Assembly (NCBI GenBank): GCA_024704765.1
Contig: JAKMXF010000354.1
Coordinates: forward strand, 109,690 to 173,689
DNA: 64,000 bases
From: Oopsacas minuta
Lineage: Eukaryota; Animalia; Porifera
Direction of reading: 5' to 3'
A program made the position numbers and the translations under genes. This document shows positions 15,802-34,657 of this stretch, piece by piece (the first letter of the stretch is position 1; each line of letters starts with the position of its first letter). The notes under the pieces were generated by a model. That model had not been told where the DNA came from and did not search any database. It saw only the letters and a program-made list of their open reading frames with translations.

Positions 15802-16376
15802 TCTATATTATTAAATCTCAATTGTTGTCTGTTTGTTTGTCCGTTGTCAAGGAAAGGATTTATGGTATGCATTTTGAAATTGTAGCATAACTATGTATTT
15901 ATCGTGTTTATCAAGTTAGTAATAAGAATCCAACCAAGCTTCACTAAATATACCGAATATGCTGAATTCGATTTTCACACTTTTGGATTAATCATATGTA
16001 AATTTATTGTTGTTTTTATGAATATAAAGTAAACAAACTAGCCAAATCTCAAAATATACGTACAGCCTTTCTCTAACCAGCTACCCAGGGGTAACTAAAT
16101 ACGCTGAATTCGAATTTCCCATTTTCAAGTTTCTCATATGTAAATTTATTTTTTGTGTTTTTTATGAATAAAAAGTAAACAAATTACAAAATTGAAGTAG
16201 AATCATACTTTCAACGACTATACTGGTATACTCGAGTATGCTGAGTCTGAATTTTGTAAACAGCATCGATATTATTAAATCTCAATTGTTTTTTGTCTGT
16301 TTGTTTGTCAGTTGAATACCTTGAGGCGCAATGCGCCGAGTTCATCCACGAACCGACGAGCCAAAGGCTCGTATTA
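15802..16376 (+). mobile_element. Non-autonomous Helitron-like element with about 140-bp internal subrepeats
   Basis: 5' TCTATATTATTAAATCTCAATTG followed by a GTYT-type microsatellite; three GCTGAATTCG/GCTGAGTCTG-headed subrepeats; 3' hairpins GGCGCA-A-TGCGCC and ACGAGCC-AAA-GGCTCGT. Related copies at 21.4-22.3, 24.7-25.0, 28.9-30.0 and 37.1 kb. Confidence 0.6.
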
Positions 16377-16899: not shown

Positions 16900-17742
16900 A
16901 TGGAGACACCAACTTCATTCTGGCAATCAAGTGGGAACTTCTGGACTGAACTGTGGCGTTATGTACACGGGTTCTTCCAAGACGATTTCAATTTGATAAT
17001 GTTTGGTTCTTTTGGTGTGACTCTTACATTTTTCGTTGTACTCGGATTTTTCTTCACTTTGGTGGATATTTGGGGCCCGAGCATACTTACTAAGTATAAA
17101 GTGCAGGAAGGTAAGAATGTCCCTATCTCTTCTGCTGATTTAATAAAGCTGATTAAGTTAGCCTTTCTTAACCTTGTCGTCATAAGTTCCTGTTTCTCAT
17201 ACTTTGGATCGTATCTTATGGTTTGGCGCGGCATGGCAGTACTACCTGAAGAGTTGCCTACCTTTCAACGCTTTATCATTAACATGATACTTCTCCTTGT
17301 CATGCAGGACTTCTTATTCTATTATATGCATAGATTGTTTCATTACCCGCCTCTCTATCGTGCCTGGCACAAGAAGCATCACGAGTTCACTGCACCTGTA
17401 GCTATAGCTTCTGTCTATGCACACCCCGTAGAGCATGTGTTTGTTAACCTCCTGACTGTATGGCTGCCTACACTCATTTTGTGTGTTCACTGCGCTGAGT
17501 ACTGGGCATGGTTTGGTATTGTTATCACCGGTACGTTTGTTAACCACTCAGGTTACCATTTACCCTTCGTTCCCATTTCTCCAGAACATCATGATTTCCA
17601 TCATCTCGTGTTCACAGAGAACTTTGGAAGTTTCCGGTACCTGGACTGGCTGAATGGTACTGACAAACAGTGGCAGGCCTCCCAACAGAAGAAGAGAGAT
17701 CATCCTCTCACTTCACTCACTCCTATCAAGTATAAGTGCTGA
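16900..17742 (+). CDS. FAXDC2: Fatty acid hydroxylase / sterol desaturase family protein (FAXDC2-like)
   Basis: Histidine boxes HRLFH, HKKHHEF, YAHPVEH, HSGYH, HHDFHH; membrane segments. Confidence 0.8.
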   Translation: METPTSFWQSSGNFWTELWRYVHGFFQDDFNLIMFGSFGVTLTFFVVLGFFFTLVDIWGPSILTKYKVQEGKNVPISSADLIKLIKLAFLNLVVISSCFSYFGSYLMVWRGMAVLPEELPTFQRFIINMILLLVMQDFLFYYMHRLFHYPPLYRAWHKKHHEFTAPVAIASVYAHPVEHVFVNLLTVWLPTLILCVHCAEYWAWFGIVITGTFVNHSGYHLPFVPISPEHHDFHHLVFTENFGSFRYLDWLNGTDKQWQASQQKKRDHPLTSLTPIKYKC

Positions 17743-18105
17743 TCCTATTCATACAGCAACAGCTGTGGAGTTGTGTTTTCCTGAATTTTATTTTCACTCT
17801 TACTTTCGTACATTTAATATTATTTATTGTCGATTGTTATGTCGAAGTTTAATATTTATCTATGTTTACTGGACCTGAATTACATGATTGTATTTTCAGA
17901 TTATGCATTGTATATGACACCAACGAAATCGATATTGTAAAGGTGAGGCATTAGCCAAATGATAATATCCTTCGTCCTACTAACCTTCATTCGCGATTTT
18001 TCCATCAAGTTACCTTCATTTTTAGGGGGGGGGCTAGATGAAATTGTATAACCATGAACAAATAAGATTCAGCTACTCGGTAATAGCCAGTAGAAGCTAT
18101 TACCG

Positions 18106-18377
18106 CCTTCCTCTCCTATTATAACACTCTCTAAGCCTAATGATAACTGTACTAACATTGTAATCAGCTGGACTACTCCTGATAGTGATAGATATATTAT
18201 ATTATACTCTGTGTATCGTAGTAATACATTATTAACTACTACAACAGATAATCATTACATCAGATACTAATCAGCTGACTATCAATACATAGTCAGCTGA
18301 TTAGTATCTGGTATACTGTTACAGCTATTAGCTGTGCTGGTACCTCTACTCCTGGCGTAAAGACACTCAGATTGCAA
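18106..18377 (+). pseudogene. Isolated FN3 pseudo-exon, paralogous to exons c/d of the receptor at 24-29 kb
   Basis: Translates PSSPIITLSKPNDNCTNIVISWTTPDSDRYIILYSVYRSNTLLTTTTDNHY, then a frameshift, then YTVTAISCAGTSTPGVKTLRLQ. No splice acceptor; contains a fold-back insertion. Confidence 0.8.
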
Positions 18378-18871
18378 GTGAGTCAGTCACAATTTGTTCG
18401 CTTTATCCGGAGGAAAACCAATTGATTTCTTTACATAATATATATCTAGGTTGCTAATTAGCTGCTAATCCAGACCTTTATATCAGTAATACCAATACAA
18501 GCAATGATGTATATCTTGATTGAGTAGGTTAATATTCTTTTTTTGTTTATTTTATGGTATATTTCCACCAGGGATACTCAAACTGTCATGAGGCAGAGCT
18601 ATGGCCACACTTGTCCACTTTTCCTATATAGCCAACAGAAGTATATGTTATTCCCTATATTATATGCGCAGATCATCTCCCCTTATTAGAATACAAAGTG
18701 GACAAACACAAACAATTTATAATGTAACAAACATTAATAATATTCTATAAGTAGAATGTATACAAGCTATAGGATAGGAAAGATGAACTTAGTTCTAATC
18801 TCTCAAATAAAAAATATACAAACAGGCATAATAAGAACTACGTGATGTATCGCACCTTTTGAGTTAGTTAG

Positions 18872-21332
18872 TTAAAGCGCATATACGCAACAGATAGTGA
18901 CGCAAAAACTGCAACAGATACCGCAACAGGTAATAGTGCAAATTGGAAGCCATACTAGAAGGTTTAATAGAAGAAGTAATCCTGTAACACCAATTATAAA
19001 TAGATCTAGAATATAATATAATAATAATAAATACAAACACACTTATTAACATTACAAATACACAAATACTAACATCCCAAATCAGTTCTATGAAGAAATA
19101 ATTATATAATAAATAGTATATCTTCATAATCATTTTATACAAATAAGAATAGTCTGTAATATTAATACCTGAATTTGATATTTCTGATAATTTAGGTCCA
19201 CAGTGTTCGGGACGTCCTATATAGAATTCACTGTTAAGGGGTATGTGATAATTATGATTTTGTAATTTTAAACGTTATAGAAAGGTGTAGTAATATTTGA
19301 ATTTCATGGCCGTTATATAGAGGAGGTGGCAATTAAGACAGGTGACTGATATATAAGGTAATATAGTTGAAGTAGTTAATGGTGGCAAACCAAGGGGCTT
19401 CAAATGTGGACTTGATGGGGAGGTGACAACTATATAAATTGGCCGGTATATGCAGGTTTAGTGCCAGTAAGGGACCAATAATGGTGGCCGCTATGTACAG
19501 GTGACCGTTATACAGAGGTGGCCGTTAAGTTTGACTGTATTTGACAGTATATCCATGCGAAAATGGGGGTAAAATGACCATATCACCAGGAAACTTAGAG
19601 CTAAAGCAGGCTGAAGCTCCCTACAGACATGAAATTTGAACAATTTTAGCAAACTAGATGATATTCTGCTGTTCGGATAATCGAGGATCTACTGTACTAT
19701 CCTATATAGTCATGAAATCCTTACCATTAAAACGAAAAGTTTAACTCCAGGTACAGAGCTACCTACACAACTAATAGCAGTAACAGAGTATGTGTACAGA
19801 GTATTGGCAGCTAGAGATGAGGTATCCTCTACATATACTGTACGTGTGCTTTTTGCAAGGAATATGTCATTACGATACACAGAGTATGTGCGTATAGGAC
19901 TGTCAGTAGAAGGAGTATCCCAGCTGACATCAAAGCCACAGGTATATGAAAAAACACGAAGAACTGGAGAGGATGGAACTACACAGGTACCAGAACATAG
20001 GATAGTATCCACAATGTAGTGCTGTTATATGACCATGTACTTACCGTGACGGTACACTTACCTCTCTATTATTCTATACATTATTGCTACCTATTACACC
20101 GTCATGGTAAGTAAATAGTCATAATACAGTACAAATTAGTCATCAAATATATAACAAGGCCAGTGGCAGATCCAGGGGGAGGTGATAGGAGGATATATCC
20201 CACCACAAGGATGAATTTATATAATATGGAATCGTAGTCACTTGTGATATCTATTGAAATTCCTACCAATACACTGAAATATTGGCTCAAATTGCAAAAT
20301 TCGGTTGAAACCTTGGAACTAAAGTTGTATCAAATAGGTCTTGTCGTCCAGGGGCTTAGGTACAGTTAGGGTTGCAAGATTATCAAAAGTCCAAACCCAG
20401 ACAAAATTTCGCTCCAACAATTGCGGTATGTTTTGGCATTGAACGAGGGAATAGTAGTAGGCGGATACCTACCTCTTTTCTAGGGAATATTTCACCAATT
20501 AATGTCAAGGAAAGTTATAACTTTAGCGCGCACTCATTCTAGTCAAGCATCCTTATTTAAAGCTACCCACGGCTGGATAATTACCCCTCCTCACTACCAA
20601 TTCCTGGATCCGGCGATAACTTCTGGAAGACAACAAACCTCCTATAGATATAGTATTAAAACTTGAGTTACCAGCACAGTTCATAGCTATAACAGAATAT
20701 TCATATTCTGTATCTATTTCTAGAGTAGTGTAATAGGAATATGACGAGTTAGGAGTACTATGGAAATAATCTCCATTAATAAACAATTGATACATCTGTA
20801 TAGAACTGTCAGTAGCTCCAGGTATCCATGATAGCTCTACGTTACCAGAACAAGTTGTAGAGTCAAGATTAGCTGTTAGAGAGACAGGAGGGGAAGGAGG
20901 GGCTAGAAGGAAATATAGTGTTAAATGAATAAATAAGGTTTCATAATATTTTCAACTAACCAGCTTGTTGAATATTAATAGTTTCTGTTAAAGTAATTCT
21001 GTCAGTAGAATCTCCATTAACTATATAATCGTTACTACAACCAAGTCTTAGACCATTATCAGCAAGAGTATAGGATAAAAGAGTTATTGTTCCTAACACA
21101 TTCGCCGTCTTACTAATTGGTGAATCAGCTGTTAACTTGGACAGATCAACACCTCCTTGAGAATCGACACCATTGACAATAATATCAGAAAGGGGAACAG
21201 AATTCCCAACAATAAAATTGGTAACAAGGGAGAGAAAGCTATCACCAGGATTAGGAACACTCAGGTCACAGCTGACTGTTATACTCTCTCCTGGACAAGC
21301 TAGTGCAGGATTTGAAGTTACTATACCCATAC
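18872..21332 (-). pseudogene. Ig-FN3 membrane receptor, copy 1 (damaged): Ig exon 21332-20961, FN3a 20902-20639, FN3b 19978-19725, remnant about 19205-19169, TM exon 19005-18872
   Basis: All listed full exons have AG/GT boundaries. FN3b is 254 nt (1-nt deletion near the donor relative to 258 nt in copy 2, breaking phase). Exons c, d and most of e are absent. The last exon encodes LFIIGVTGLLLLLNLLVWLPICTITCCGICCSFCVTICCVYAL*. Confidence 0.7.
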
Positions 21333-22274
21333 CTAAATAGAAATAATAAAGATTCTAATCACCGTCTGTGTAGACTAATACTATAAATAGTATAATAGTA
21401 CAGTTGTAAAATGGTTGACTTAGTCTCTCTTCTATTCGGCCACCAGTTTCAGCATACTTTGTTACTACTAAATATGTCTTGAGAGAATCTCAACCAATAT
21501 TTAAAAATTTGGATAATTTGTTTACTTTATAATCATAAAAAGAGCATAAATTTACATATGATAAATTCGGATTCAGCGTACTTGATTATCCCTATGTGTC
21601 TGTTGAGAGCAAGTCTCTACGTATATTTTGAAATTTGGATAATTTGTTTACTTTATAATCATAAAAACAACAATAACCTTACATATGATTAATTCAACTG
21701 TTTGAAAATCGGATTCAGCATGTTCGATATATTAAGTGAAGTTTTATTGAATTCTATTTACTTTTTTGATGAACACTCGATACTGCATATTACTAAATCT
21801 CAATTGTTGTTTGTTTGTTGTTTGTCCGTTGATATGTAAATATATTGTTTTATGAATAGGCTTGCTCTAAACGGCTACCTAAGGGTAACTAAGTACGCTG
21901 AATCCGAATTTCGCATTTTAAGTTTCTCATATGTAGATTTATTGTTGTTGTTATGAATATAAAGGAAACAAATTAGCAAAATCTCAAAATTTACTTAGAT
22001 ACTTGCTCTCAACGGCAACAAAGTGGGTTGATCTTACAAAATAATTCAATAATATATATGCTATATACGATATTTGTGAATTACATTGTTGCAAATATAG
22101 CTATATTTTTAATTATTACTAAAAGGGCGCCGTCAATTTGGAGAACAATGGATACCTTGAGGCGCAATGCGCCGAATTCCTCGCGAAGCGACGAGCCAAG
22201 GCTCGTACATAGTTATGGAACAATTTCAAAATTGCATAACGTAAATCCTTTCCTTGTCAACGGAGACACAAACA

Positions 22275-22306
<32 letters not shown>

Positions 22307-23250
22307 CAATTGAGATTAATAATATAGATTACTACTCACTATTATTGAAGATAATAGAAGATAGAAGTAGCAGAATATAGCACAAAACTGTACTTCTAGC
22401 AGCCATCTAGACAGAGAACAGATAAGAGCTGTTAGTATTGAATATAACAACAATTTGTCTATTCTTTACAACTTATCAGTTACCATAAGCTTTTTCAGAA
22501 TAGATTCGGTTTTTGAATGAAAAACAAAGATTCTTGAAATTTGGATTGCAGCTACGGACTTGTAGACAATTAGTCAACGCAACGGTAGAGCCGAGCGTCG
22601 TGTTACAAATACATATCAACAAAACGCGAAGGACAGAAATAACGTGAAATGGAGTGCGCTCCAAAATTGAGGAGCGCTTAATGCTCTGCTACTATGGGTG
22701 CCGGGTGGCCTTGAGTGGTGCCAACTTGGAGTATGTGATGCGAGTCCATGCGACAATTGCCTAGTGTAACTTAAATATCATGTGGCACAAATGCACAACT
22801 TGTGAGGAACGGCGAGTGGTCGTAATAACATGTTGTAATTATATTTATTCCATTATTCGAAATAAATACAGTTGAAATCGGATTATTTTGTCCATTTGAT
22901 TGCACTGCCAAAAACGACAAAACAACCCGATAGACGAATACATCAATGATGCTAATTTCTGTTAGACAAGATTATTTTTTGTAGCTAATATACCAATTAA
23001 CAATAAACTTGAAGATTACATACTGATATCCAGTGGTAACGAATATTGAACTATTCTGTTGTAACTTTGCTATTGAATTTAACAAAAACTCAAAACATCA
23101 ATATATAGCTATTACAAATACAATCAAGATGAGAGTGTATCTCTAAAACCTATTGAAATTTAATAATATGGGAGTATAGATAGTATCAGTTCTGATATGA
23201 ATATCATATGACACTACCCTACGTGAAAGTACAGAATATGTATATTCTGT
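19690..23250 (+). repeat. Segmental tandem duplication, unit 1 (pairs with about 27070-30930)
   Basis: Collinear near-identity by eye, offset 7378 bp at FN3b and 7394 bp at the Ig exon, rising to about 7680 bp after an extra Helitron-like segment in unit 2. Confidence 0.9.
21450..22328 (-). mobile_element. Nested Helitron-like composite: a plus-strand copy (about 21785-22212) inside a minus-strand copy
   Basis: Minus-strand A|TCTATATTATTAATCTC start at 22328 followed by (GACA)7 on the plus strand. The inner copy ends with a GAGCC/GGCTC hairpin plus ACATAG|T at 22212. Reverse-oriented subrepeats (TCGGATTCAGC) at 21.5-21.7 kb. Confidence 0.55.
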
Positions 23251-23848
23251 ACTAACTATGAGGCGTGCTGGTACTCTGAACAACTTTCTCTACGTCATAA
23301 TTATCATTAGGCTATGTAAAGTAATATACTTGTTTCTCATCCCTCCCGCCCCAAACCGGAAGATTTTATTTCTATTATTTCCAAATTTATGGATAATTCT
23401 TTGATCACACAGTGTGCAATCCTCATTTTTCTAGTTGTATAGTTGAAAAATTCAATATTTTAATGCCCAGAGAGAATGTGGCGTGATATCGAAGGGTCAA
23501 AATGTGTTATATATTCACTGGCCAATAAAAAATAAAGATAAATACCGCCCGCCATGGCAGTTTCCGAAGAAATTCCGGGTGAGAAACAAGTAATTAATTT
23601 TACATGGACTAATAGTATCAATCTTAGTCATCTGTATACTGACTATTGTTAGAGTGATAATGTACAAGAAACTGAAGTCTACTAACATACAGAACCACCA
23701 CACAAACATGAGTATATACTATATAGATATAGTTCCTGTATCTCCTGGTAGAACAGCTGATCCCTTTTACACATGTATGGACCCTGAAGGTACACATTCT
23801 AGTTCTCATGAGTCTGTTAAAACTCCTCCGTATTCTAGCTTGAAGTGA
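22985..23848 (+). pseudogene. Decayed plus-strand receptor relic: FN3 fragment plus TM and cytoplasmic-tail exon (23594-23848)
   Basis: About 23205-23310 reads YDTTLRESTEYVYSVLTMRRAGT, homologous to FN3a YYTTLEIDTEYEYSVIAMNCAGN. 23594-23848 reads LILHGLIVSILVICILTIVRVIMYKKLK...IYYIDI...FYTCM...PPYSSLK*. No clean acceptor before the TM exon. Confidence 0.55.
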
Positions 23849-24115
23849 AGTGTAGATTCATTTATTTGTTTACTACGTTGTATATATCGTTTTTAGCGAA
23901 TCTATTAGTATATTTGTTGTTTAAAAGGGTAAGATCATATATTCGATAAACAAACAATAAAGTAACAAATATTATTAAGATTCTATAAATAGCATGGATA
24001 AAAACTATAGGATAGGAAAGATGAATTTAAATAGTTCAAATAATAAAATATACACTCAGGATAGGACAGGATAGGAGCTAGTAGTATATCACACCTTATT
24101 AGTTAGTTATGAGAG

Positions 24116-27100
24116 CTAGGTTAATAATACTAATAGAAATCCTCCTATAACACCAGCTACATATGGAGCTAAAATAGAATAATAATAATAATAATAAATA
24201 CGCACAAACAAACTTATTAACATTACAAATACACAAATACTAACATACCCGAACCAGTTTCTATGAAAGAAATAATGATATAATAAATAATACGTATATA
24301 CATAAGTAACATAATCAATAAAGGTATGAACTTACGCCTATTGTGTAATACTGTAGAATAAAGTAAATAAAATCATAACTCATTAGATACAAATAACAAT
24401 ACTTAGTATGTAATATGTATACCTGAATCATAATCCATACATATTGATGGTCCTCCACATTGTGATATTCGTAGACAAGCTGTAATCTCTGTATTGACAG
24501 TACCTGTAATAAAGTTATGAGGAGTTATAGCCAAACTATAGGTAGTGTCAGTAGAGAGCTGTGAGAATACATATGTTTCAGAGAACTGCCAAATGTCGCC
24601 TTGAGAATAAGAATAGTCCAGATGAAGTGAGTAGGTGAGTAGGAGGATAGGATTGCTTTCTGTATTCGTGTCGAGAGTCTAAAAATTGTATGATAGGGTA
24701 GATCTATATTATTAAATCTTAATTGTTGTCTGTCTGTCTGTTTGTCAGTTGTCAAGGAAAGGATTTACTGTAAGCAATTTTGAAATTGTCCCATAACTAT
24801 GTATTTATCGTGTTTATCAAGGAAGTTAATAGAATTCATTAAAACTTAACTAAATATAGAACATGCTGAATCCGAGTTTATGTACTCGAGGACCGTAGGC
24901 CCGAGTGTGGACACGAAGTGTTTGCAACCGCGTAGCACGAGCAAGCGAAACGTCCTCGTACTAGAAAGCTCAATTAATCTATGCGTATATATACATATTT
25001 GAATATGTTCGTATCTTCGGAATTGATTGAAGAAACTGGAGGACCCCCAGGACAGATTTTTGGCATACGAGGGTATTTCTGGCCTGGCTCGGACTATTTC
25101 GAGTCTTGAACAAAAAATTACACCAATGACGAAATTATGACGTAATTCACCTTTTGGGATTTTCAAAATATCACATTATTAGCTACTACTCAGCCACTAT
25201 TTATGCTTTAAAATATGAATCACAGGTACCCCCCTCAATATGCCGAATGTTCTGACGGTATGCTCGAAACACAAATTACACATATACTACCCAAATGCGA
25301 CATAGCAGCTCAGGTATTACCACAGAAAGCTATTGAATGGAATTTGGATGGGTCATAGATAAAATAATTTAAAATGTCCACAAAAATTAACCTCGAGGTA
25401 CGAGGTGCGAAGTAGCGAGCTTAGAGCACCCAAAAATGTAACTGTTTAATAGCTAAGCTAACCTGATACACTAAGCTGTTGCGCAGCGACCTAGCAAGGG
25501 AAGCGGGCTAGTATTACACAACGCCGAGAATATTGAAATACTAAAATTAATGGCTAATATATAAAAAGGAACTTACCCATGTAATATTAGTTCCAATATT
25601 AGTTTCGTCATAGCTGAGAGAAATATTATTGAAAGATAATGAATATTCTGGGATGTTTGTATAGATAACATCAGAAGTAGAGGTACCAGCACAGCTTCTA
25701 GCCGTAACAGAGTACTGATATACTGTATTGATAGTTAGCTGATCAGTATCTTTGTACTGTTTATCTGTTGTAGTAGTTAATAATGTATTATCACGATACA
25801 CAGAGTATTCTATAATATCTCTATCACTATCAGGGGTAGTCCAGCTGATCAGAATGTTAGCACAGTTAATATCAGGCTCAGAGAGTGTGACAATAGGACG
25901 AGAAGGAGCTACAAAATAAATAGTAAATAATTATCACTAATCAGTAAATTACTAATTATCAGAAATAAACAAATCTATATCAAATCAGCGTCTGTGCCAA
26001 CTAAAATTTTACCAAATAAATTTCTGTGGATTATTGAACTGTACTATTCTGCTAATATACATTTTAGAAAAGAAAGATAATTTGAATTTTACTAATCTTG
26101 TTAGAGATTTTAAAATGTTAAAATTGAATTCTCCGTCCCAGTTTACCCTCTTTAACAAGTGGAAGCTAATCTATAGGATAATATTGAAATGTTCACTAAA
26201 AGGTGTGATTAATCATATGATAAATGTGTACCCTACCCTGACAAAAATTCATCAATATCCAAAATTTCCACACAAATAAAGGAATAGTTGGTCTATTCTT
26301 GATGTCAATACAGTAAAAGAGTACTATTCAAAGGGTATTTGCTAATAAATTCGCTATCCATGTATTATGATAGAAAAGTTTCTAAGAATTCTATGAAATA
26401 CACGGTAATAAGTTGCATAATTTCCAACTCTGTGTACTTAGTGAAACCTATCACCTTATATCTTAATAATTTTAACCACTTTCAAAAACATAGATGTATA
26501 TTTATAGATAGTCAACCAATTTTAAAACTGAGCCCCTATACTATAAAATAGTATTCGTCGGCACGGTAAATATATTATCGTCCTTCATATAATCTCACCT
26601 CTAACAATAAAATTATTAACACCAGGAGTAGAGGTACCAGCACAGCTGCTAGCCGTAACAGAGTACTGATGCACTGTATTGATAGTCAGCTGAATAGTAT
26701 CTGTGTACTGATTGTCTGCTGTAATAATTAAAGGATTATCATTACGATACACAGAGTAAAATATAATATCTCTATCACTATCAGTAGTCCAGCTGATTAG
26801 GATGTTAGAACAGATATTATCAGGCTCAAAGAGTGTTACAATAGGAGAAGAAGGAGCTACAAATATATAGTAACTAAAGTAAACTCGTTATAACGAAGTG
26901 CTCGGGACCTCCGTTTCAATTCGTTATAAGCGGAATTTCGTTGCATCGATCTATCATTTCGTTATAAACTAAGGTTTTCTAACAATTAGATGGAAGGATT
27001 TACGGACCATTGGACTACTTAATCATAAGCGTGTTTCGTTGCATCCGACTGGGTAATAACGCGAGTCTACTGTACTATCCTATATAGTCATGAAATCCTT

Positions 27101-28726
27101 ACCATTAATACTAAGAGTTATAACTCCAGGTACAGAGCTTCCTACACAACTAATAGCATAAACAGAGTATGTGTACGAAGTATTGATAGCTAAAGGTGTA
27201 GCATCTGTATACTCTGTGTTAGTTGGATTAGCTAGGAGGTTGTCATCACGATACACAGAGTATGAAAGAATAGGTCTGTCAGTAGAAGGAGTATCCCAGC
27301 TGATACCAAAGCTAAGACAGACAGGAACCTGAAAAACATCAAGAACTGGAGAGGATGGAACTACACAGGTACCAGAACATAGGATAGAATCCACAATGTA
27401 GTGCTGTTATATGACCATTTACTTACCATGACGGTACACTTACCTCTCTCTATTATTCTATACATTATTGCTACCTATTACACCGTCATGGGAAGTAAAT
27501 AGTCATAATACAGTACAAATTAGTCATCAAATATATAACAAGGCCAGTGGCAGATCCAGGGGGAGGTGATAGGAGGATATATCCCACCACAAGGATGAAT
27601 TTATATAATATGGAATCGTAGTCACTTGTGATATCTATTGTAATTCCTACCAATACACTGAAATATTGGCACAAATTGCAAAATTCGGTTGAAACCTTGG
27701 AACTAAAGTTGTATCAAATTGGTCTTGTTGTCCAGGGGCTTAGGTACAGCTAGGGTTGCAAGATTATCAAAAGTCCAAACCCAGACAAAATTTCGCTCCA
27801 ACAATTGCGGTATGTTTTTGGCATTGAACGAGGGAATAGTAGGCGGATACCTATCGCTTTTCCAGGATATGTTTCACCAATTAATGTCAAGGAAAGTTAT
27901 AACTTTAGCGCGCACTCATTCTAGTCAAGCATCCTTATTTAAAGCTACCCACGGCTGGATAATTACCCCTCCTCACTACCAATTCCTGGATCCGGCGATA
28001 ACTTCTGGAAGACAACAAACCTCCTATAGATATTGTATTAGCTGTGTAGGTAAATTTTGAGTTACCAGCACAGTTCATAGCTATAACAGAATATTCATAT
28101 TCTGTATCTATTTCTAGAGTAGTGTAATAAGAATATGATGTGCTAGGAGTACTATGGAAATAATCTCCATTAATAAACAAATGATACATCTGTATAGATC
28201 TGTCAGTAGCTCCAGGTATCCATGATAGCTCTACATTACCAGAACAAGTTGTAGAGTCAAGATTAGCTGTTAGAGAGACAGGAGGGGAAGGAGGGGCTAG
28301 AAGGAAATATAGTGTTAAATGAATAAATAAGGTTTCATAATATTTTCAACTAACCAGCTTGTTGAATAATAATGGTTTCTGTTAAAGTAGTTCTGTCAGT
28401 AGAATCTCCATTAACTATATAATCGTTACTACAACCAAGTCTTAGACCATTATCAGCAAGAGTATAGGATAAAAGAGTTATTGTTCCTAACACATTCGCC
28501 GTATTACTAATTGGTGAATCAGCTGTTAACTTGGACAGATCAACACCTCCTTGAAAACCGACACCATTGACAATAATATCAGAAAGGGGAACAGAATTCC
28601 CAACAATAAAATTGGTAACAAGGGAGAGAAAGCTATCACCAGGATTAGGAACACTCAGGTCACAGCTGACTGTTATACTCTCTCCTGGACAAGCTAGTGC
28701 AGGATCTGAAGTTACTATACCCATAC
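24116..28726 (-). CDS. Ig-like + 4 FN3 + fifth FN3-like domain cell-surface protein, copy 2 (apparently intact, 5' exon not found). Exons 28726-28355, 28296-28021, 27360-27103, 26856-26599, 25908-25577, 24678-24423, (24350-24336), 24168-24116
   Basis: Manual splicing at AG/GT sites gives about 600 codons without a stop. Phases 1-1,1-1,1-1,1-1,1-0,0-1,(1-1),1-stop are all compatible. Ig pattern PGESITVSC...TITLLSYTLADNGLRLGC; FN3 patterns P..P...SW......Y.VY......L...T.Y.YSV.A. C-terminal hydrophobic tail PYVAGVIGGFLLVLLT*. Confidence 0.8.
24703..24964 (+). mobile_element. Short Helitron-like element in the receptor intron, 24 bp from a splice acceptor
   Basis: A|TCTATATTATTAAATC start, GTCT repeats, imperfect terminal hairpin ACGAG...CTCGT and CTAG end. 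Confidence 0.6.
25981..26107 (+). repeat. Dispersed repeat, inverted copy at about 52183-52310
   Basis: caaatcagcgtctgtgcc(a/g)actaaaattttaccaaataaatttctgtggattattgaactgtactattctgctaata is present in both places. Confidence 0.75.
26877..27072. mobile_element. CAGT-type MITE in the intron after FN3b
   Basis: (a)AGTAAACTCGTTAT ... ATAACGCGAGTCTACTG|TA; same family as 36559-36708 (shared aacgaagtgctcgggacc). Confidence 0.55.
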
Positions 28727-29947
28727 CTAAATAGAAATAATAAAGATTCAAATCACCATCTGTGTAGACTAATACTATAAATAGTATAATAGTACAGTTG
28801 TAAAATGGTTGATTAGTCTCTCTTCTATTCGGCCACCAGTTTCAGCATACTTTGTTACTACTAAATATGTCTTGAGAGAATCTCAACCAATATTTAAAAA
28901 TTTGGATAATTTGTTTACTTTATAATCATAAAAACAACAATAACCTTACATATGATTAATTCAACAGTTTGAAAATCGGATTCAGCATGTTCGATATATT
29001 AAGTGAAGTTTTATTGAATTCTATTTACTTTTTTGATGAACACTCGATACTGCATATTACTAAATCTCAATTGTTGTCTATTTGTTTGTCTGTTGTCAAG
29101 GAAAGGATTTACGGTATGCAATTTTGAAATTGTCGCATAACTATGCATTTATCGTGATTATCAAGGAAGTAAATACGTAGAATTCAATAAAACTTCACTA
29201 AAATATATTAGAACATACTGAATTCGATTTCTCACTTTGGATTAATCATATCTAAATTTATTGTTGTCTTTATGGATATAAAGCAAGGTTGCAACCGAAT
29301 AGTTCAATATTCGGTATTCGGTTAAGCAACTATTCATGAATACTGATATTCAGTTTGATCGGTTTCAACCTTGATACAAAGTATACAAATTTCAAAATTG
29401 TTGTAGAAACATGCTTTCAATGGTTATGCTGAGTCTGAGTATGGTATTGTAAACAACATCTATATTATTATATCTCAATTGTTGTCTGTTTGGTGTTTGT
29501 CCGTTGATATGTAAATATATTGTTTTATGAATAGGCTTGCTATAAACGGCTACCCAAGGGTAACTAAGTACGCTGAATCCGAATTTCGCATTTTAAGTTT
29601 CTCATATGTAGATTTATTGTTGTTGTTATGAATATAAAGGAAACAAATTAGCAAAATCTCAAAATTTACTTAGATACTTGCTCTCAACGGCAACAAAGTG
29701 GGTTGATCTTACAAAATAATTCAATAATATATATGCTATATACGATATTTGTGAATTACATTGTTGCAAATATAGCTATATTTTTAATTATTACTAAAAG
29801 GGCGCCGTCAATTTGGAGAACAATGGATACCTTGAGGCGCAATGCGCCGAATTCCTCGCGAAGCGACGAGCCAAAGGCTCGTACATAGTTATGGAACAAT
29901 TTCAAAATTGCATAACGTAAATCCTTTCCTTGTCAACGGAGACACAA

Positions 29948-29987
<40 letters not shown>

Positions 29988-30930
29988 CAATTGAGATTAA
30001 TAATATAGATTACTACTCACTATTATTGAAGATAATAGAAGATAGAAGTAGCAGAATATAGCACAAAACTGTACTTCTAGCAGCCATCTAGACAGAGAAC
30101 AGATAAGAGCTGTTAGTATTGAATATAACAACAATTTGTCTATTCTTTACAACTTATCAGTTACCATAAGCTTTTTCAGAATAGATTCGGTTTTTGAATG
30201 GAAAATAGAGATTCTTGAAATTTGGATTGCAGCTACGGACTTGTTGACAATTAGTCAACGCAACGGTAGAGCCGAGCGTCGTGTTACAATTACATATCAA
30301 CAAAACACGAAGGACAGAAATAATGTGATTGAAGTGCGCTCCAAAATTGAGGAGCGCTTAATGCCCTGCTACTATGGGTGCCCGGTGGCCTTGAGTGGTG
30401 CGAACTTGGAGCATGTGATGCGAGTCCATACGACAATTGCCTAGTGTAATCTAAATATCATGTGGCACAAATGCACAACTTGTGAGGAACGACGGGTGGT
30501 CGTAATAACATGTAATTATATTTATTCGATTATTCGAAATAAATACAGTTGAAATCGGATTATTTTGTCCATTTGATTGCTACCAAAAACTACAAAATAA
30601 CCCAATAGATGCTAATTTCTGTTAGACAAGATTATTTTTTGTAGCTAATATACCAATTGACAATAAACTTGAAGATTACATACTGATATACAGTGGTAAC
30701 TGAATATTGAACTATTCTGTTGTAACTTTGCTATTGAATTTAACAAAAACTGAAAATATCAATATATAGCTATTATAAATGCAATCAAGATGAGAGTGTA
30801 TCTCTAAAACCTATTGAAATTTAATAATATGGGAGTATAGATAGTATCAGTTCTGATATGAATATCATATGACACTACCCTACATGGAAATACAGAATAT
30901 GTATATTCTATAGCTATAAGTTCGTGCTGG
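27070..30930 (+). repeat. Segmental tandem duplication, unit 2
   Basis: See unit 1. Carries an extra about 420-bp Helitron-like segment (about 29050-29470) between direct repeats of atattatta(a/t)atctcaattgttgt, and (GACA)8 versus (GACA)7. Confidence 0.9.
28850..30009 (-). mobile_element. Nested Helitron-like composite, longer version of 21450-22328
   Basis: Same termini, hairpins and subrepeats; minus-strand A|TC start at 30009. Confidence 0.55.
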
Positions 30931-31455
30931 TAACTCTATTAACACAATAGCTGATCCTATAACTTCTGGAGGTTTTTTGTATATTTTCTGTTGAAAAATT
31001 TTCAATGAGAGCAATAAATGATCTCATTTGGCTCCTTCCTCTCGTATTGTGACACTCTCTAAGCCTAATGATAACTGTACTAACATTGTATCAGTTGGAC
31101 TACTCCTGATAGTGATAGATATATTATATTATACTCTGTATATCGTAGTAATACATTATTAACTACTACAATAGATAATTATAATCATTATATCAGATAC
31201 TAATCAGCTGACAATCAGCAGGGCCGTAAGAGCTGGTACGGCAGGTACGGCGCTCGCGCACCAATGATTCAGAATTTCTATTACTATTAATGGTCATATG
31301 TAATGAATGCCGCACCAACACAATGTACCTAGCCGTACCAATAATTATTTGCTTCCTACGTCCCTGTGATCAATACAGTATATCAGTACACTGTTACAGC
31401 TATTAGCTGTGCTGGTACCTCTACTCCTGGTGTTCTAAGACACTCACATTGCAAG
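30790..31455 (+). pseudogene. Plus-strand receptor relic: FN3a-like fragment (to 30971), 60-bp intron, FN3c-like pseudo-exon (31032-31455)
   Basis: YDTTLHGNTEYVYS..IA..CAGNSINTIADPITSG|gt, then PSSRIVTLSKPNDNCTNI...YSV...YTVTAISCAGTSTPG with frameshifts, a mutated acceptor (tttgg) and a MITE insertion. Confidence 0.75.
31219..31366. mobile_element. 148-bp hAT-like MITE inserted in the FN3 pseudo-exon
   Basis: CAGGGCCGTA...TACGTCCCTG termini and subterminal GGTACGGC/GCCGTACC; absent from the paralogous exons. No clean TSD visible. Confidence 0.6.
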
Positions 31456-32030
31456 CGAGTCAGTCACCATTTGTTCGCTTTATCCGGAGTAACGTCGCAC
31501 ATGGTCCATGCCATTAGGGCTTAGGGCACTAATTAGTAGAGATCTACAATTTCCGCAGTAATAATATTCATTAAAATTAAAGGGTCCAAGAATTTCAAAT
31601 ATTACCAGTAGAGTCCTGGAGGGCCGACCGGAGATTTGTCACTAGAGCGGCACGGGTGGTTTCGTACTTTAAATTATATTTAGTTCAAAATGTAATTTTA
31701 TTTTTATTATTATTAGACTTAAACATTCAACCACAGAGAGGCAAGATAAAACTGAAGCTCTTTGGTTTCACATTTGGTAAACGATAGCATTTCCAAAGAG
31801 TTGCAGAGTACTTTCTTGTATGCAAAAGGTTGGCTCTATCTGTATTGCTAATAAGATAAAATACTCTTACCTTGTGCTTGATACTTTAATTCCAATACAG
31901 AAAATATACCATGTGATAAACAAAAAATGAATATTGACCTACTCAATCAAGATATACATCATTGCTTGTATTGATATAACTGATATAAAGACCTGAATTA
32001 GCAGCTAATTAATAACTTAGGGATACATTA

Positions 32031-34657
32031 CACTACGTAACACAATTTTTGTTTGGCTTCAATTTTTGATGTTCCCTTATGCTTTTTGCGTCGCTGAATT
32101 CAAAAATCGTGTTAGTTTTTCCATATCATCAATGCTTTTTGACGTATTTACACTTTTTGCTTTTTCCGAACAAGTTGTGTTGTTCATTATATGCAAATTT
32201 ACCTACAGCTCTTGTAATAGATTTAAACACGTAGTGATGTGTTGATAAGTTAATTTGAACATGAAAATCATTACCAAACAGTACATTGCTGATTACAAGT
32301 CCTAAAGAAAACAAAACGCACTCATGTTAGAGAGTTAAAATACTTCAAAAATGAACTGTTGAACGAGCTTTCTTTTGTGACCAGAAATGTCTTCCCTTAT
32401 CAAAAACCACATGTAATCGCCCATCATTGCACTGTCCCAGCGGCCCTGATACCGTCTTTCCATTAGCTGAATATCTTGGTGAAATCTCTCGCCATGTTCC
32501 TCGCTGAAATCCCCCAAATTTTCTTGAAAGAAGTCAAGATGAGAGCATAGAAAATGAAGTTTCAACGACATGCGACATCCCATCTTTTGGTAGCTTGTGA
32601 TCAGAGTATTCACTATCTCTTCATAATTAGGATCTTTGTTATTTCCTAAAAAGCCATTAACTACATCACGAAATGCCTGCCATGCTTTTCTTTCTGTTTC
32701 GGTCATTTTACCCTCCAGGGTTCTTGACTTTAACATGGTGGTTATTTGGGGGCCAACAAATATTCCTCCCTTTAGTTTAGCATCTGATAATTTTGGAAAC
32801 ATTGCACGGATTTCTTGAAAAGCTTCTCCTTCAAAATCCAAAGCTTTAACAAATTGCTTTACTAAACCTAGTTTTATATGAAGAGGTGGTAGTAAAACTT
32901 TTTCCCGGCATACAAGTGGCTCTTTGATGACATTGTACTTTCCTGGCATTAATTCTTTTCTTGGCGGCCATTGAATCTTCGAGTAGTGCTCTCCATCAGC
33001 TCTGCTGTTCCACAAACAAAGAAAACATGAGTATTTGGTGTAACCACCCTGCAGTCCCAACAAAAACCCCAACATCTTAAAATCACCACAGAGCTGCCAG
33101 TTAAATTCAGCATAGTTTATTTTAAGCAGTAGTTGCTTGACATTTTCATAGTCTTCTTTCATTTGTATTGAATAAGCAAGTGGAATTGACGGATATTTGT
33201 TCCCATTATGAAGTAAAACTCCTTTAAGACTTTTGGTGGAACTGTCAATAAAAAGTCGCCACTGAGAAGGGTCATGTTCAATTCCAACAGCATCAAACAA
33301 ACCATTCACATCTTTGCAATAGCACAGATCCTGTATTACATCAAAGTAAACAGAATAGTCCAAGTGCCTCTTCCTGTAAGCAGTTATTTTGCAATCATCA
33401 CGCAGCAAATTCCACTCGCTTAATCTTGACGTCAATAGCTCTGCTGCAGATTTTGTTAGTTGCAGATCTCGTATTAAGTCATCTAATTCTCTCTTAGAAG
33501 GATAATGACGATCTGCACTTGTTGATTGGAGATACTCCTCCTCAGCATCCGAAGTTTCACTTGATATCGAGTCTTCACATTCAGTATTAAACTCCAACTA
33601 AAATGACAAGAATAAAACACAAGATGCAGATTGTGGGTCACCCTTACAGCATATAAGCTAGCGTAGCCTTATATTATAAAACATAAAACTACTTACATTT
33701 GCTGGTGGTTTTGGAACTGGTAAAGTTTCACTATGAGGAACAGGTGCAATGGATGATGGTATACTTGGATAAGTCAGTGCTCTTCTTCCCTTAACCTTGC
33801 GGTACTTAGCAATATTTACCATACAAAAGTAACAATCATCATGATGGTTTTGTGGCTCTCTCCAAACTCTTGGAATAGCAAATGGCATAACTCTAGCGGA
33901 ACCCCTCAACCAAGCTTCAAGATTAGATCGACAGCTGCCACAAATCACATGTGGGGCCCAGGCCTTTTCCTGATCCCCAATGGACATCCCAAAATACAGT
34001 CTATACGCTTCCCAATACTTAGCTTCTTTTGATATTTTATTTGAAACATGTTTGTCACCAACATAATATCCACAAACATAGCAAAATGAGTCAGGTGAAT
34101 TCTTGCATTGTCTACTAGCCATTGCAATTTCTAAATTTGAAAAACACTAACTTAACGTAAGAACAACCAGCAAGTTATTTCTGCCTCTCTGCTAAAGGCA
34201 GTTATACTTATGCTTATACTAGCTGCTGGTAGCTTATAGTATTAATATAAGTAAATACTTTCCAAGTGAAGGTACTGAATAGCAAATAAACCATACGCAA
34301 GAACGAAATTTCTAAGTTTTGCAATCCTACCCCAGCCTGGAATTCTGATGCTGTTTAAGCTGTGCATTCGCAGACACTTTAAGTGTCTCCCAGAGCTTAA
34401 AAAGACAAGAGACAGTGAAGGGAGTGCAAAATGTTTGTTATCTTTATTGTTATAGCACAAAAGATTTTGATTGTGACGTACGTTTTTGCTGGGTTGGCTA
34501 AGCGTGTAACCTGCTCATATAAATAGGCTTCCTGAAAGCTAACGATCGATGATAGAAAAAAACTAATTGTATTTTCGGAATCAGCGCCTCAAAATTATCC
34601 ATAAACAATCAAAATATCAAGCCAAACAAAGATTTCATAAAAATTTGTTACGTAGTG
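32031..34657 (-). mobile_element. Full-length Chapaev3-type (CMC superfamily) DNA transposon
   Basis: TTA|CACTACGTAACA ... TGTTACGTAGTG|TTA: perfect 12-bp TIR, about 110 bp of imperfect subterminal similarity, 3-bp TTA duplication. CAC...GTG ends with a TWA TSD are characteristic of Chapaev3. Confidence 0.85.
32335..34122 (-). CDS. Chapaev-type DDE transposase, 562 aa; exons 34122-33697 and 33597-32335
   Basis: A 99-bp phase-0 GT..AG intron joins the Cys-rich N-terminus (CKNSPDSFCYVCG, PHVIC..C, HHDDCYFC) to the catalytic core (FIDSS, CGDFK, PPLHIKLG, EHGERFHQ) with no stop. Confidence 0.88.

Follow-up and report, generated by a model that had tools for sequence, protein, structure and literature searches.

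What are the immunoglobulin (Ig) and fibronectin type III (FN3) exons that lie on both strands of a 64-kb stretch of the genome of the glass sponge Oopsacas minuta (C354:109690-173689, "the window" in what follows), and do they belong to any receptor family that already has a name? The preliminary description of this DNA had seen in it a repeated unit made of a minus-strand Ig-FN3 gene, a CpG-rich spacer and a plus-strand FN3 relic. We conclude that the locus is probably a small cluster, in part decayed, of genes from a lineage-restricted family of Ig superfamily (IgSF) receptors that had not been described before. The assembly searched (61.46 Mb, 365 contigs) represents one haploid genome; the genome paper reports 365 scaffolds, about 61 Mb and 36% G+C (PMC10280926). 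The exons were searched individually, and the full-length work used the public protein records P0157 and P0008.

The window is free of assembly gaps, and its self-comparison reveals a duplicated segment: positions 19688-23277 match positions 27066-30937 with 94-95% identity overall and 97-100% in most 60-nt windows, and the identity extends through the introns. Both copies read alike on the minus strand: the signal-peptide exon comes first, then a single V-like Ig exon, then FN3 exons. The signal-peptide exon lies 1.0-1.3 kb upstream of the rest in each copy and is 100% identical between the two. About 0.7 kb of unique sequence separates the two units. Along the window, the elements follow each other as relic, gene 1, relic, gene 2, relic, in alternating orientation. 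The alternation of minus-strand genes and plus-strand relics is thus as first described, except that the middle relic consists mostly of a tail exon rather than of an FN3 exon. The third unit that had been suspected at 18.1 kb is reduced to a plus-strand FN3 pseudo-exon, with no minus-strand gene beside it.

The intact gene of about 600 codons that had been proposed for unit 2 is indeed there. It spans 24116-30087 on the minus strand, has 8 exons and 624 codons, and agrees exon for exon with P0157 (624 aa, LOD99_12534, "hypothetical protein"). All its junctions are GT-AG with pyrimidine tracts, and the introns that bound the domains are in phase 1. Read along the minus strand, it starts with the signal-peptide exon (30021-30087; ATG at 30087-30085, GTGAGT donor, phase 1), which is followed by intron 1 (28727-30020; dispersed repeats, CpG observed/expected ratio 0.85-1.26), the V-like Ig exon (28355-28726) and four FN3 exons (FN3-1, 28021-28296; FN3-2, 27103-27360; FN3-3, 26599-26856; FN3-4, 25577-25908), the last of which also carries the first strands of the membrane-proximal domain. 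The exon of this beta domain (24423-24678) has a conserved Q-C-G motif. The terminal exon (24116-24168), a shortened homologue of the transmembrane exon of unit 1, encodes 17 mostly hydrophobic residues and then a stop. In the full-length model of P0157 (mean predicted local distance difference test score, pLDDT, 71), a signal helix precedes six beta-sandwich modules, and a short helix forms the C-terminus. Judging from this C-terminus, the product of unit 2 is possibly a tail-less, lipid-anchored or weakly anchored form, which might act as a co-receptor or a decoy.

The N-terminal domain is invisible to Pfam: no family matches the Ig exons or residues 25-147 of P0157, and there is no credible Pfam match for the Ig, membrane-proximal or tail exons. 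Its nature emerges from structure and profile searches, which had been suggested from the outset and which agree. The AlphaFold2 (AF2) model of the Ig domain, built from eight paralogues, has a pLDDT of 93.8. Foldseek gives antibody light-chain V domains as the best matches. Among the 50 best VIA matches (Z 9-10), nearly every one is an Ig V/I-set domain or the variable region of an antibody or nanobody; CD8, NCAM, contactin, myelin P0, Dscam and titin are represented. The Atlas structure search, entered with P0157, leads to V-set clusters at TM-scores of 0.61-0.66. Two cysteines, C20 and C97, placed in strands B and F, and G96 are invariant in eight paralogues, the F-strand context being D-x-G-L-x-L-G-C. 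The Ig profile, run against 1.84 billion representatives, retrieves 174 proteins at E ≤0.001, and the long matches outside the family that we sampled are multi-Ig proteins (Pfam Ig_3, Ig_2, I-set). By fold and by profile, the N-terminal domain is Ig-like, of a V/I-set-like type.

The stalk is more conventional. Pfam fn3 (PF00041) scores 52.6 bits on P0157, for a gathering cut-off of 25, and single FN3 exons score 26.1 (FN3-2 of unit 2), 25.0, 23.9 and 19.5 bits. The best whole-chain structural matches of the P0157 model are gp130, OSMR and IL-12R-beta; contactin, Robo and LAR-type phosphatases also match.

The family extends well beyond the window. The genome-wide count of paralogues gives at least 14 copies of the Ig exon in O. 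minuta; they are spread over nine contigs, and several lie next to each other. Two members are intronless full-length genes, and the public record "hypothetical protein LOD99_3186 [Oopsacas minuta]" matches with 100% identity an intronless paralogue located outside the contig of the window. The canonical order is signal peptide, Ig, FN3 (one to three in the paralogues that we looked at and four in unit 2), a membrane-proximal beta domain that bears a Cys, a transmembrane helix and a short cytoplasmic tail. Same-strand tandem arrays of three to five family genes within 20 kb also occur in the ENA assemblies ERZ25071281, ERZ25072730 and ERZ20067936. The aligned tails of all four genomes share three tyrosine motifs: Y-x-Y-I-D-[LMI], Y-x-x-M and a C-terminal Y-[AGS]-N-L-K. 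Phosphorylated YxxM is the SH2 motif of p85, and phosphorylated YxN that of Grb2; by these motifs, the tails of the family might serve p85- and Grb2-type SH2 docking. Both minus-strand genes of the window lack this conserved tail. The family is a new, lineage-restricted and previously undescribed family of IgSF receptors: no description of it was found in the literature searched, its Ig domain has no Pfam model, and the earlier remark that it matches no named gene family holds.

In a three-gene array of ERZ25072730, the middle gene has an Ig exon (L033:13011-13535) broken up into two open frames, between neighbours that are intact, which suggests that pseudogenes are common in arrays elsewhere too.

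In the window, the damaged copy noticed in the preliminary description is unit 1 (18872-22406, minus strand), a recent duplicate that is both truncated and frameshifted. Its signal-peptide exon (22340-22406) is the one that is unchanged between copies, and its V-like Ig exon (20961-21332) is 95% identical to that of unit 2 at the amino acid level, with six replacements and one silent change. The FN3-1 exon (20639-20902) has a 12-nt in-frame deletion relative to unit 2. The FN3-2 exon (19725-19978) has lost 1 bp at about 19742, which is 17 nt before the conserved donor, so that this donor now falls in phase 0 instead of phase 1. The FN3-3 and FN3-4 exons are missing entirely, and most of the membrane-proximal exon is gone: there remain 48 nt (19169-19216), the end of the exon with its conserved Cys, open in phase 1. 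The terminal exon (18872-19005) would encode, in phase 1, a transmembrane helix and a short Cys-rich tail, and this Cys-rich exon is unique to the locus within the genome. Because of the 1-bp deletion in FN3-2, the remnant and the terminal exon are out of frame; the public model reads the remnant in phase 0 and stops three codons into the terminal exon. Both of them nevertheless keep an open frame in the phase that they had originally, so that either the lesion is recent or it is a sequencing error.

Unit 1 corresponds to the public record P0008, a protein of 375 aa which has been automatically named "Chitin-binding protein". No result obtained here supports that name. The annotated first exon of P0008 (23681-23797, minus strand) is the antisense strand of the tail exon of the family; it is probably spurious, and the exon and the product name are likely annotation artefacts.

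On the opposite strand, the pieces tell of other members of the family. The orphan tail exon (23594-23848, plus strand) is intact and open and encodes a transmembrane helix and a cytoplasmic tail with the three tyrosine motifs: it is the canonical C-terminal exon of the family, and stands tail-to-tail with unit 2. Relic A (18094-18422, plus strand) is an FN3 pseudo-exon with a frameshift, a stop and a small internal insertion. Relic B (31022-31521, plus strand), another FN3 pseudo-exon, has a 1-bp deletion and has received an insertion of about 150 bp (31219-31367), a CpG-rich dispersed element present in at least 30 genomic copies of 75-89% identity. The two relics are 92% identical, have in common a frameshifting 1-bp insertion, and have both lost their AG acceptor. 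At the nucleotide level they share 85-87% identity with the last FN3 exon of paralogues located on different contigs (87% for relic A and that exon of loci C64 and C360), versus 82-84% for the exons of the window; they therefore derive from a separate plus-strand gene. We rejected the idea that they are local inversions of two window exons (those labelled D and E), the FN3 exons of other loci being closer.

Inside the duplicated segment there is also a short plus-strand FN3 fragment, found on the side of unit 1 at 23201-23271 by DNA match (to 23290 with the protein profile) and on the side of unit 2 at 30862-30930, where it is 86% identical in nucleotides to an FN3 exon of the paralogue at C360. 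Weak "FN3" matches on both strands at 23146-23401 were discarded as partly palindromic, the only credible part being a fragment of about 70-90 nt. Judged by these matches, the plus-strand pieces are the remains of oppositely oriented paralogues. Pieces in opposite orientation are found elsewhere in the family: C360 has a convergent gene pair, and C64 has a plus-strand membrane-proximal remnant beyond the tail of its minus-strand gene. Tandem and inverted duplication of an IgSF cell-surface family, with pseudogene relics, is supported.

How do these genes change? Between units 1 and 2, the FN3-2 exon has a nucleotide identity of only about 70%, in contrast to 92-100% for its flanks. Its synonymous divergence (dS) is 0.30 and its nonsynonymous divergence (dN) 0.235, for dS values of 0.01-0.07 in the neighbouring exons. 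This high dS implies that the divergence of FN3-2 is old and that the copies are mosaic; positive selection on FN3-2 after the duplication was rejected on the same grounds. We found no conversion donor for this exon in the assembly, the next best match being about 51% identical in amino acids for either copy.

The same mosaic structure is seen between contigs. For genes that lie on different contigs, dS is 0.02-0.20 in the last FN3 exon and about 0.9-2 in the Ig exon. A cassette is shared by C63:10450-11237, C64:38275-39061, C317:239966-240705 and C360:90042-90311. C63, C64 and C317 have in common only this 0.8-kb cassette (last FN3 exon, intron and membrane-proximal exon; 91-93% identical in nucleotides), whereas the Ig exons of the genes that bear it are 20-40% identical in amino acids and their flanks are unrelated. 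C64 and C63, for instance, are 28% identical in the Ig domain and 90% in the membrane-proximal domain, and across the family the identity matrices of the separate domains disagree. This pattern indicates that phase-1 exon cassettes have been exchanged between dispersed loci. We also considered that C63 and C64 could be haplotigs of one locus, which would have meant a huge allelic diversity of the Ig domain, and rejected it on account of the single 0.8-kb cassette that they share.

As for the Ig exon, the ratio of nonsynonymous to synonymous changes is 6 : 1 between units 1 and 2. Between unit 2 and C360, dN is 0.22 and dS 0.21 over 122 open codons. Two gene pairs of another assembly give 36 : 8 and 20.5 : 1.5, and one recent pair in ERZ25071281 gives 18.5 : 7.5 (dN/dS about 0.8). 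For the FN3 and tail exons of the same genes as the 36 : 8 and 20.5 : 1.5 pairs, dN/dS is 0.4-0.7 in most comparisons. The fast evolution that had been attributed to the family is thus visible both in Ig exons, whose dN/dS is about 1 or more in recent duplicates, and in the mosaic of exon cassettes.

The surroundings of the genes are rich in repeats. What had been taken for a CpG-rich spacer does have a CpG observed/expected ratio of 0.9-1.26 (at 21.5-23.0 kb and at 29.0-30.5 kb), versus 0.14-0.6 in the gene bodies, but its G+C content is only 27-39%, and it is not a separate element: it is made of the signal-peptide exon, intron 1 and upstream DNA, largely dispersed repeats. Intron 1 and the introns near it are filled by two short dispersed elements, one about 230 and the other about 320 bp long, the repeat stretches being 29054-29700, 15802-16192, 21563-22013 and 24703-24879. 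A first look with the 647-bp query 29054-29700 returned 1764 repeat candidates genome-wide. Rfam found no RNA gene in the interval 15-35 kb, which includes the 31219-31367 element. A pair of inverted repeats of 129 bp, 95% identical, was also noticed, with one member in an intron of unit 2 (25980-26108) and the other 26 kb away (52181-52309); it is probably another short mobile element.

The cluster is bounded on its left by an intronless open reading frame of 280 aa (16900-17742, plus strand), which encodes a fatty-acid hydroxylase (PF04116, E 1.7e-22). Immediately to its right lies an intronless open reading frame of 420 aa (32335-33597, minus strand) with no Pfam match, which looks as if it came from a transposon; it may account for the loss of whatever came after relic B.

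A mechanism can be proposed for the family as a whole. The variable Ig tip would bind a ligand, the FN3 stalk would hold this tip away from the membrane, and the phosphorylation of the tail tyrosines would recruit SH2-type adaptors. The family evolves by tandem and inverted duplication, loss of copies, and exchange of phase-1 exon cassettes between dispersed loci. Several points weigh against this reading of the locus. Ligand, phosphorylation and adaptor binding are predicted from motifs only. The public gene models of both units may be ab initio. The conserved tail is missing from the two window genes, and both could therefore be on their way to becoming pseudogenes. A dN/dS of about 1, calculated from small counts, fits relaxed constraint with the frame kept just as well as diversifying selection. 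Last, that the family is specific to glass sponges is suggested by the similar G+C content of the three ENA assemblies and by protein identities of 45-60%.

Other explanations of the locus have to be weighed against a small, partly decayed receptor cluster. It may be that both genes are pseudogenes, in a locus that would be no more than a graveyard of the family, which we consider rather unlikely. Such a decay would suit the frameshift and the truncation of unit 1, the terminal exon of unit 2, which is a cut-down version of the transmembrane exon of unit 1 with a stop after 17 residues, the canonical tail exon stranded on the opposite strand, and the combined dN/dS of about 0.8 between the copies. 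Unit 2 nevertheless keeps 624 open codons in 8 exons with canonical splice sites throughout, the signal-peptide exon is fully conserved between copies, and the original phase in which the downstream exons of unit 1 are still open implies that its damage is very recent or a sequencing error. It is very improbable that the tandem copies are an assembly artefact, that is, two haplotypes of one locus placed in series. The copies are 94-99% identical, introns included, as haplotypes would be, but they differ in exon content, they are separated by about 0.7 kb of unique sequence that holds the tail exon, they are flanked by distinct relics, and there are no gaps in the window. We also regard as unlikely that these are ordinary adhesion or matrix-contact proteins whose cluster results from neutral duplication and decay in a repeat-rich region. 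An Ig-FN3 architecture is typical of such proteins, contactin, Robo, LAR-type phosphatases and gp130 are among the whole-chain matches, and flanking dispersed repeats can drive duplication. Against this, we found no conserved single-copy orthologue, the family being multi-copy, clustered and mosaic, with a closest Ig exon only about 60% identical in another assembly; divergence is far greater in the Ig exons than in those of the stalk, and tyrosine motifs that are conserved across genomes point to signalling.

The remaining explanation concerns function. The family might consist of allorecognition or microbe-recognition receptors of glass sponges, with Ig tips diversified by selection and cassette exchange, by analogy with Hydractinia Alr, a proposal that we hold to be improbable. 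It draws on the clustered arrays, the pseudogenes, the mosaic exons and the Ig dN/dS of at least 1 in recent duplicates, and on a Pfam-invisible V-like Ig domain and tyrosine-motif tails that mirror those of Alr (PMC9546547). Glass sponges, moreover, discriminate self from non-self, yet the aggregation-factor genes of demosponges are reported absent from them (PMC5400394). The genes of the window, for their part, have no signalling tail and one of the two is broken; the dN/dS values come from small counts and are compatible with relaxed constraint; the diverged FN3-2 exon has a high dS, and hence cannot be taken as evidence of positive selection; and many lineage-specific expansions of IgSF genes play no role in allorecognition. 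A more specific version, in which the family would be the self/non-self system of glass sponges, the phosphotyrosine tails would signal syncytial fusion or rejection, and tail-less copies such as unit 2 would be decoys or partners, is offered by analogy and seems to us quite doubtful. The reading that accommodates these observations best is, in our opinion, that of a small, partly decayed cluster of a lineage-restricted receptor family.

What does such a cluster teach us? The window locus is a decayed part of the family, with two genes that the public annotation already contained, unnamed or misnamed. The family as a whole, clustered, mosaic and quickly changing, with a conserved tyrosine tail, is a testable set of candidates for the self/non-self molecules of glass sponges, and the exchange of cassettes between dispersed loci is a clean case of receptor diversity made without somatic recombination. 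The family resembles the demosponge aggregation factors in being a set of clustered sponge genes of the kind proposed for self/non-self recognition (PMC5400394); it differs from them in its domains: of the Calx-beta and Wreath domains that mark aggregation factors, Pfam has a model for the first, which finds no match in P0157 or P0010.

With NCAM, contactin, Robo and the LAR-type phosphatases, the family shares an ectodomain made of Ig and FN3 domains and phase-1 exons that bound these domains, and its Ig domain aligns to the Ig domains of NCAM, contactin and Dscam at Z of about 9. The bilaterian Ig-FN3 receptors, however, have several Ig domains and are conserved and mostly single-copy, while the glass-sponge family has one Ig domain and is multi-copy, restricted in range and mosaic. 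The order of the domains is that of gp130, OSMR and IL-12R-beta: one N-terminal Ig domain, then five FN3-type domains, a single transmembrane helix and, in the canonical members only, tyrosine docking motifs in the tail. Unlike these class I cytokine receptors, no family member checked (P0157, P0008, P0010, P0011, P0001, P0009 and P0012) has a WSxWS motif, and whole-chain TM-scores of only about 0.2 speak for a shared domain order, not for homology.

The Alr genes of Hydractinia are clustered IgSF genes with many pseudogenes, whose V-set-like N-terminal domain was revealed only by structure prediction, and Alr1 and Alr2 have a demonstrated role in allorecognition (PMC9546547). Clustering, pseudogenes, an N-terminal V-like domain that is cryptic in sequence, an FN3-like membrane-proximal part, a single transmembrane helix and tyrosine motifs in the tail are found on both sides. 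Alr proteins, unlike the glass-sponge family, carry two or three Ig-like domains without a series of true FN3 domains, and their motifs are immunoreceptor tyrosine-based activation or inhibition motifs (ITAM/ITIM) instead of Y-I-D-[LMI], YxxM and YxN. The likeness is one of architecture, that of Alr being taken from PMC9546547. After Hydractinia Alr, the glass-sponge family is a second non-bilaterian case of a V-like Ig domain that sequence models had missed.

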